A program made the position numbers and the translations under genes. A stretch of 63,103 nt of DNA, the filler included, from Octopus bimaculoides (Eukaryota), in the NCBI RefSeq assembly GCF_001194135.2. It is 6 parts of 5 records of this genome, joined end to end, with 100 filler letters (N's around TTAATTAATTAA, not from the genome) between each part and the next. Parts side by side here need not be neighbours in the genome. Positions count along the whole stretch, not along the records: positions 48,875 to 56,611 come from NC_069003.1; 5 more parts are not named here. One strand, 5' to 3'. Of the stretch, positions 49,179 through 49,385 are shown in pieces. How positions within the stretch are numbered: the first letter of the stretch is position 1; each line of letters opens with the position of its first letter. The notes under the pieces are model-generated. The model did not search any database, was not told the origin of the DNA, and saw nothing but the letters and a program-made list of their open reading frames with translations.

Positions 49179-49385
49179 TTACCGAAATGCACCCGACACG
49201 AACCCTGCGCCCAATATTTCACCAACATCGAGAACGGACGTCGTACAGAGAACTTCATTGCCCGTGTCAACCTGTGCACTTGCCCTCGTCCTCAGCACTG
49301 CATCAAACCCCGAACCAAAGTCCGCCAGGAGGAGCTGCTTGGCCCAGGGAACATACCTTATGATCTTCATTACTGTTCAGCCTGA
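49179..49385 (+). CDS. Terminal exon encoding an Argos/giant-lens-like six-cysteine domain (upstream exons not visible)
   Basis: Acceptor atgtcgtttcag|, phase 0. Reads LPKCTRHEPCAQYFTNIENGRRTENFIARVNLCTCPRPQHCIKPRTKVRQEELLGPGNIPYDLHYCSA then TGA. The GC-rich coding-like island sits in microsatellite DNA. Cys spacing C-x5-C-x22-C-x-C-P-x4-C-x24-C matches my recollection of the last Drosophila Argos module. Confidence 0.75.
   Translation, partial: LPKCTRHEPCAQYFTNIENGRRTENFIARVNLCTCPRPQHCIKPRTKVRQEELLGPGNIPYDLHYCSA

Follow-up and report, generated by a model that had tools for sequence, protein, structure and literature searches.

The question at this locus is whether a short, cysteine-rich exon in octopus DNA encodes the last module of a relative of Drosophila Argos and, if it does, whether the octopus protein captures ligands of the EGF receptor. 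Argos is the textbook example of how a secreted antagonist can shut down a receptor tyrosine kinase, namely by sequestering the receptor's ligand, and to our knowledge Argos was long regarded as confined to insects. The window, by which we mean the whole 63,103-nucleotide stretch of Octopus bimaculoides DNA analyzed here, is composed of six parts of the genome assembly joined by filler, and the exon lies on the part taken from NC_069003.1 (positions 48,875 to 56,611). The original prediction described a terminal exon carrying a set of Cys motifs and proposed that it encodes either the last module of an Argos family protein or a related Cys-rich secreted protein. Both the coordinates and the motifs proved to be exact: the translation contains C-x5-C (C4 to C10), C-x-C-P-x4-C (C33 to C41), Y-C (Y65, C66) and EELL…NI.Y…YC, with a splice acceptor before the exon and TGA after it (Table 1).

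Table 1. Coordinates of the exon, its gene and the repeats around it. Positions are those of the window unless given for L001, the O. vulgaris locus on OX597836.1; a slash marks an exon border.
Feature	Coordinates	Strand	Remarks
D3 exon, last coding exon of LOC106874624 (68 codons)	49179-49385	+	whole third two-finger (2FTX) module, D3; translation LPKCTRHEPCAQYFTNIENGRRTENFIARVNLCTCPRPQHCIKPRTKVRQEELLGPGNIPYDLHYCSA, 68 residues, six Cys
Stop codon TGA	49386-49388	+	directly after the D3 exon
3' end of last intron, polypyrimidine tract and AG acceptor	49139-49178	+	phase 0; conserved with O. vulgaris
Presumed 3' UTR and downstream flank	49389-50100	+	TA/CA microsatellite-rich; collinear with O. 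vulgaris
O. vulgaris coding exon 1	L001 10001-10114		signal peptide and N-terminus; ends …GTTCTT/gtaagc
O. vulgaris coding exon 2	L001 about 15850-16233		D1 and D2; ttttacag/CCT … GGAAAA/gtgagt
O. vulgaris coding exon 3	L001 17719-17925		D3; tttcag/TTACCG
Intronic hairpin	48877-49053		about 125 bp upstream of the D3 exon; 52-nt arms, 98% complementary; 73-nt loop
Nested palindrome	50966-51442		outer arms 50966-51067 and 51341-51442 (98%); inner arms 51056-51196 and 51211-51351 (92%)
Palindrome-related copies in O. vulgaris	L001 17419-17651		flank the last intron
Dispersed short repeats	54850-55031, 56126-56220		each matches 4-10 places in L001
Assembly gaps (N runs)	about 50130-50930, about 52789-53105		(TA)n-flanked

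The exon, its parent gene and its orthologues

The 68 residues encoded by the exon are identical to the C-terminus of the O. bimaculoides protein XP_014777905.1 (P0008; UniProt A0A0L8GUZ4; LOC106874624 isoform X2, 234 aa), which we found in the 90% cluster of the O. vulgaris protein P0005, and the window exon is therefore part of an annotated O. bimaculoides gene. This identity, together with collinearity between the piece and O. vulgaris OX597836.1, confirms the earlier attribution of the DNA to a probable cephalopod. The RefSeq product name is "U-scoloptoxin(11)-Sm2a". The AG acceptor occupies positions 49177-49178 and is preceded by a pyrimidine-rich tract (…ccattatcatgtcgtttcag/TTA; upstream context …cattatcatgtcgtttcag/TTA), and over the final 40 nt of this intron, ...atatatatatacccattatcatgtcgtttcag, the window and L001 are identical. 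The exon boundary agrees with the tblastn exon map of O. vulgaris P0005; in the fragment models P0002 and P0007, the intron is read through ('FFFQ/LPKC'). The O. vulgaris coding sequence (...YCSA) and those of the transcript contigs L002-L006 (...VCSA) likewise end in TGA. Neither AATAAA nor ATTAAA was present between positions 49389 and 51000, a range that includes an N gap.

We read the structure of the gene from the O. vulgaris locus, where there are three coding exons (signal peptide; D1 and D2; D3) separated by two introns, both in phase 0 and with GT/AG borders. Exons 2 and 3 are about 1.5 kb apart in O. vulgaris, and the window piece begins 304 bp 5' of the exon, so the regions encoding the signal peptide, D1 and D2 lie outside the window. 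The signal peptide and earlier modules, which the original prediction had not seen in this stretch, are present in the full protein, which is composed of a signal peptide and three modules with 16 Cys. P0008 contains a single hydrophobic segment, at residues 5-19 (KD 2.28; maximum elsewhere 1.27), and residues 2-19 form a helix in the full-length AF2 model (overall pLDDT 36). These features predict a secreted protein with an N-terminal signal peptide and without a membrane anchor. Signal peptide cleavage probably occurs after residue 21, which would leave a mature chain of 213 aa (24.5 kDa, pI 9.2). The 16 Cys would allow up to eight disulfides, with the pairing inferred, and P0008 contains zero N-glycosylation sequons. 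The gene of three coding exons encodes a compact secreted protein.

To place the exon among known proteins, we ran phmmer with it exhaustively against 1.84 billion representatives; its real matches were confined to two 50%-identity clusters. The best match was P0001, an uncharacterised 237-aa protein of Argonauta hians (E 7.8e-26), whose last 68 residues are 71% identical to the exon; the second was the 77-aa fragment P0002 (E 1.5e-17). Two other proteins from the representative search, P0003 and P0004, are low-complexity repeat proteins and were discarded as spurious. With D3 alone as the query, phmmer returned no non-cephalopod relative among these representatives. A search with P0001 as the query recovered P0005 (O. 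vulgaris CAI9739673.1, 234 aa), which is 97% identical to P0008, and also P0006, a protein translated from a transcript of a public RNA-seq run. Orthologues are therefore present in O. vulgaris, Argonauta hians and two further cephalopods, the latter from transcripts alone. A word-indexed protein search returned zero matches with the exon, and only cephalopod proteins with P0001 or with the alignment. A metagenome scan gave 128 pattern matches, of which 0 were confirmed.

At the DNA level, the window piece is collinear with L001 starting 35 bp upstream of the exon, with 95% identity over the exon and its immediate flanks, 81-95% over the flank that follows the stop codon (49389-50100) and 75-85% farther downstream. 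The O. bimaculoides and O. vulgaris exons differ by seven synonymous and two non-synonymous changes, and the O. vulgaris locus carries one gene. An alignment of five full-length sequences combined the O. bimaculoides, O. vulgaris and Argonauta proteins with two cephalopod proteins derived from transcripts, both of which are farther from Octopus than is Argonauta. Each of the 16 Cys is conserved across the five, and the proportion of invariant positions is 75% in D2, 46% in D3, 43% in D1 and 10% in the signal peptide. D2 of O. bimaculoides is 81-89% identical to that of the three non-Octopus proteins. In D3, these cephalopod proteins show almost no variation along the first finger (EPCAQYFTxIxNGxxTxxFxARxNLCxC), and the most variable part is the second finger loop, exon residues 42-59, between Cys41 and Pro60.

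Orthologous transcripts that are intronless and carry the whole coding sequence, including the module encoded by the exon, are present in five RNA-seq runs of another cephalopod (SRR27666065, 67, 69, 71 and 82). The orthologues are transcribed. These data bear on the trivial explanation that the exon is an open reading frame that arose by chance, or a Cys pattern in non-coding DNA or in a pseudogene, a reading suggested by the lack of Pfam, PDB-sequence or word-indexed protein matches to the exon alone. That explanation is refuted by the exact match to the annotated RefSeq protein, the two phmmer orthologues, the intact splice acceptor shared with O. vulgaris, the excess of synonymous over non-synonymous changes and the transcripts; a confident AF2 model of the exon (below) also argues against it, and we regard its probability as negligible.

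The transcript contigs also disposed of a candidate for recoding. The 266-aa form of P0006 (L002 318-1118) runs beyond the conserved …VCSA end as '…SAW…', which could have represented A-to-I editing that recodes the stop codon. At the DNA level, however, five of five contigs (L002-L006) have TGA at this point, indicating that the P0006 extension is a gene-caller artefact in which TGA was translated as Trp. P0007 also ends '…SAW…'. L002 differs from L003-L006 at five positions (CDS 24, 48 and 515; 3'UTR 959 and 975), four of which are A/G differences, and one A/G difference recodes Lys/Arg in D3 (KCQK[K/R]EPC). These transcripts of one gene come from different RNA-seq runs, and their A/G differences may reflect either polymorphism or A-to-I editing in the cephalopod.

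Relationship to Argos

As the reference for Argos we used the crystal construct, residues 33-217 (3c9a_A, 'Protein giant-lens'); the last-module string given in the original prediction was correct and corresponds to residues 151-213 of this chain. BLASTP of O. vulgaris P0005 against Argos aligned 159 collinear residues with 25% identity (E 7e-6), and hhalign of the cephalopod profile against the construct aligned 137 collinear columns with 29% identity at 86% probability, spanning the C-x-C-P of D1 through the C-x-C-P-x4-C of D3. In Smith-Waterman comparisons, mature P0008 scored 100 against Argos, compared with 34 +/- 5.8 for 1000 composition-preserving shuffles (z 11.3), and the alignment extended to the C-terminal YC[SM]A. 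The exon itself scored 66 against Argos D3, compared with 25 +/- 4.9 (z 8.4), a score reached by 0 of 2000 shuffles, and 28 and 31 against Argos D1 and D2, respectively. Because the shuffles preserve composition, cysteine richness alone is insufficient to explain these scores. A six-sequence D3 profile also landed on Argos D3 in hhalign (37% identity, 60 columns, E 2e-4). Overall, identity to Argos was 25-37%. Judged by these alignments, the three Cys modules of full-length P0008 and P0005 are collinear with Argos D1-D2-D3.

The Pfam Argos family (PF11581), to which the exon had been predicted to belong, matched an orthologue but not the exon. P0006 scored 27.9 bits (E 2.6e-6; gathering score 25), with its residues 94-212 corresponding to profile positions 9-126 of 129, which cover D2 and most of D3, and the five transcript contigs carry a precomputed Argos match. 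The fragment P0002 scored 18.7 bits, under the gathering score of 25, and there was no Pfam Argos match at E<=10 for the exon, a longer ORF, O. vulgaris P0005 or Argonauta P0001. Membership of the O. bimaculoides protein in Pfam Argos would thus follow only transitively, via orthologues that are 59-63% identical to it. When PDB sequences were searched with phmmer or hmmsearch, none of the four queries (exon, P0001, full-length profile, D3 profile) led to Argos.

Comparison of predicted structures led to the same protein. The AF2 model of the 68-residue exon, built with six D3 sequences (pLDDT 81.7, pTM 0.65), contains strands at residues 9-18, 21-31 and 60-66. In a Foldseek search of 350,542 PDB chains, its first-ranked match was Argos 3c9a_A (prob 0.69, TMq 0.47, 71 columns), with an E value of 0.27 that is not significant by itself; the second-ranked match had a prob of 0.02, and lower matches included the three-finger toxin 1ff4 and the activin receptor (ActRII) ectodomain 1bte. 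The full-length model, made from a shallow five-sequence alignment, had a pLDDT of 36. The other folds that had been named as possible better matches fared differently from one another. Dickkopf, colipase and prokineticin were absent among the Foldseek PDB matches of the exon model, and their Pfam families gave no match at E<=10 with the exon, P0001, P0002, P0005 or P0006; the scoloptoxin type does appear, as the RefSeq name, and plausibly denotes the same fold. The original prediction would have been refuted by a better match to another fold in the absence of an Argos profile match, and the exon and its RefSeq name present that combination in form only.

Each of these tests is weak or moderate, and all of them converge on the same protein and the same module, both specified beforehand, a link that is weak but consistent. 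The alignments specific to D3, together with the weak fold match, identify the window module as the counterpart of Argos D3 specifically. With the Pfam match of P0006, they support the proposal of an Argos family last module or related Cys-rich secreted protein, and we conclude that the exon encodes the Argos-like D3 module of a secreted cephalopod protein that is homologous to Drosophila Argos/giant-lens.

The octopus protein and Drosophila Argos (3C9A, 3CGU; PF11581) are alike in being secreted and in having three two-finger beta-hairpin modules with a Cys framework that is collinear from the C-x-C-P of D1 to the C-terminal Y-C-x-A, and their D3 modules follow the common pattern C-x-R-x-x-P-C … L-C-x-C-P-x4-C … N-I … Y-C. 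They differ in that the 234-aa octopus protein has no counterpart to two parts of Argos, a 122-residue N-terminal region and a 119-residue insert in D1, both of which were deleted from Argos for crystallisation (PMC12514838), in that their overall identity is 25-29%, and in that the Octopus and Argonauta proteins fall below the Pfam Argos threshold.

Counterparts exist in other molluscs. Khilji et al. 2025 defined the 2FTX fold from the NMR structure of a conotoxin, which resembles Argos D1-D2, and demonstrated a wide distribution of Argos-like two-finger proteins among protostomes, gastropods included (PMC12514838). Endogenous three-domain Argos-like proteins occur in Pomacea (P. canaliculata), Conus (C. 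betulinus, C. ventricosus, C. ammiralis) and Aplysia (A. californica XP_005110430.1) (PMC12514838). Like the octopus protein, the gastropod proteins are composed of a signal peptide plus D1-D3 and are well conserved, unlike the related toxins; in both groups, the signal peptide and D3 are encoded on exons of their own and the first and last introns are in phase 0. The gastropod genes have four exons (phases 0,1,0), with D1 split (PMC12514838), whereas the octopus gene has three coding exons (phases 0,0) and lacks the gastropod middle intron. Cephalopods are not mentioned in the main text of Khilji et al. 2025 (PMC12514838), and no paper in the literature that we searched describes the cephalopod member, cites its accessions or SRA runs, or links Argos to cephalopods. 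The gene is already annotated in RefSeq and a molluscan Argos-like family was published in 2025, so what the window contributes is a cephalopod Argos-like member and not a new kind of system.

Candidate functions

In Drosophila, Argos D2 and D3 form a clamp on the EGF domain of Spitz, with binding relying on D3 (PMC12514838), and this clamping blocks access of the EGF domain to the EGF receptor. By analogy, the octopus protein would be a soluble extracellular binding protein whose D2 and D3 clamp a small ligand rich in disulfides, in the manner of Argos and Spitz. The ligand in cephalopods would be an EGF/TGF-alpha-type ligand of EGFR, which would thereby be kept off the EGF receptor. That the octopus protein acts as such an Argos-type EGF-ligand trap is, in our judgement, somewhat favoured. 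The three-module framework including D3, the strong conservation, the presence of one copy at the locus in O. vulgaris and the purifying pattern of substitution favour an endogenous extracellular binding protein, and suggest, insofar as sequence can, a ligand-binding function rather than that of a fast-evolving venom toxin.

Octopuses are venomous, and the protein might instead be a component of venom or saliva of the SLPTX11 type, with the same fold, made in the posterior salivary gland and acting on prey. The RefSeq name points in this direction, and it implies that the best Swiss-Prot match of the protein was a centipede venom protein and not Argos. SLPTX11 comprises venom proteins known so far only from Scolopendra, most of which have a mass of about 20-25 kDa and eight disulfides; inhibitors of Kv channels are among them (PMC4379518). 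The octopus protein, with its 16 Cys, resembles these proteins (U-SLPTX11-Sm2a, kappa-SLPTX11-Ssm3a), likened here by name and description, in size and in its eight possible disulfides, and fits the 22.5-kDa, eight-disulfide members (PMC4379518). Moreover, recruitment of the 2FTX fold into venom is known in centipedes, cone snails and turrids (PMC12514838). SLPTX11 proteins, however, are venom-gland products with truncations, insertions and 6-19 Cys (PMC4379518), in contrast to the invariant Cys framework of the cephalopod proteins. The high identity of D2 among cephalopods, the retention of every Cys and the purifying substitutions also argue against a toxin, as does the presence of one gene at the O. 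vulgaris locus without sign of family expansion. The molluscan two-finger toxins, the cone-snail macro-conotoxins (MLSML, MMLFM and four other superfamilies, with an NMR structure for Tx33.1), are secreted proteins with 2FTX D1-D2, but they lack the D3 that the octopus protein retains, have other intron phases and are under positive selection (PMC12514838). The RefSeq name itself is an automatic best-hit label and not the outcome of a functional test. Centipede venom proteins, including kappa-scoloptoxin Ssd1b, are described as Argos-like with three 2FTX domains (PMC12514838), such that the scoloptoxin name plausibly denotes the same fold and is not a rival to Argos; SLPTX11 and the octopus protein plausibly belong to one fold superfamily, although the text of PMC12514838 does not name SLPTX11. 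A venom role appears improbable, and the label may be misleading with respect to function, since the pattern of conservation is that of an endogenous Argos-like gene.

If the protein is endogenous, its partner need not be an EGF-type ligand. It may share the ancestry and fold of Argos and bind something else, for which a domain resembling a growth factor, the ectodomain of a receptor or a component of the matrix could be candidates. The 2FTX proteins of protostomes, about 1800 in number, form 12 sequence clusters with identities to Argos of 12-26%, and knockout of M6.4, an Argos-like protein of C. elegans, has no phenotype (PMC12514838). The related three-finger/Ly6-uPAR fold, represented among our Foldseek matches by 1ff4 and 1bte, has many kinds of partners (PMC12514838), and the part of cephalopod D3 that varies most is the second finger loop. 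Against such a partner, the octopus protein keeps all three modules of Argos together with its Cys framework, including the D3 on which Spitz binding relies, and EGFR signalling with EGF-type ligands occurs across protostome phyla, molluscs included (PMC12514838). We consider a non-EGF partner a possibility worth tentative consideration.

A broader form of the EGF-ligand trap reading holds that a single, slowly evolving cephalopod Argos orthologue traps EGF ligands in neural or sensory development, with Argos-type feedback being ancestral to protostomes; we regard this extension as rather doubtful at present. It is the widest version of the camera-eye idea in the original prediction, and nothing in our results supports a specific link to that eye. 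If a cephalopod EGF-ligand trap does exist, then Argos-type feedback inhibition of EGFR would be ancestral to protostomes and not a speciality of insects. Being compact, present as one copy at the locus examined and strongly conserved among the cephalopod sequences recovered, this cephalopod member is a clean candidate for asking whether trapping of EGFR ligands is ancestral.

Repeats in the surrounding DNA

Scans of the remainder of the piece for tRNA, Rfam and Pfam matches and for tandem repeats revealed only repeats and low-complexity sequence. In mechanical scans, the N runs give rise to artefactual long ORFs and 'inverted repeats'. The hairpin in the intron upstream of the exon looks like a miniature inverted-repeat element, and the nested palindrome downstream looks like a foldback or MITE-type element, with related copies at the O. 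vulgaris locus (Table 1). The two short repeats farther downstream, for which tRNA and Rfam searches gave no match, represent a dispersed family whose matches in the 28-kb L001 are 75-92% identical and lie on both strands.
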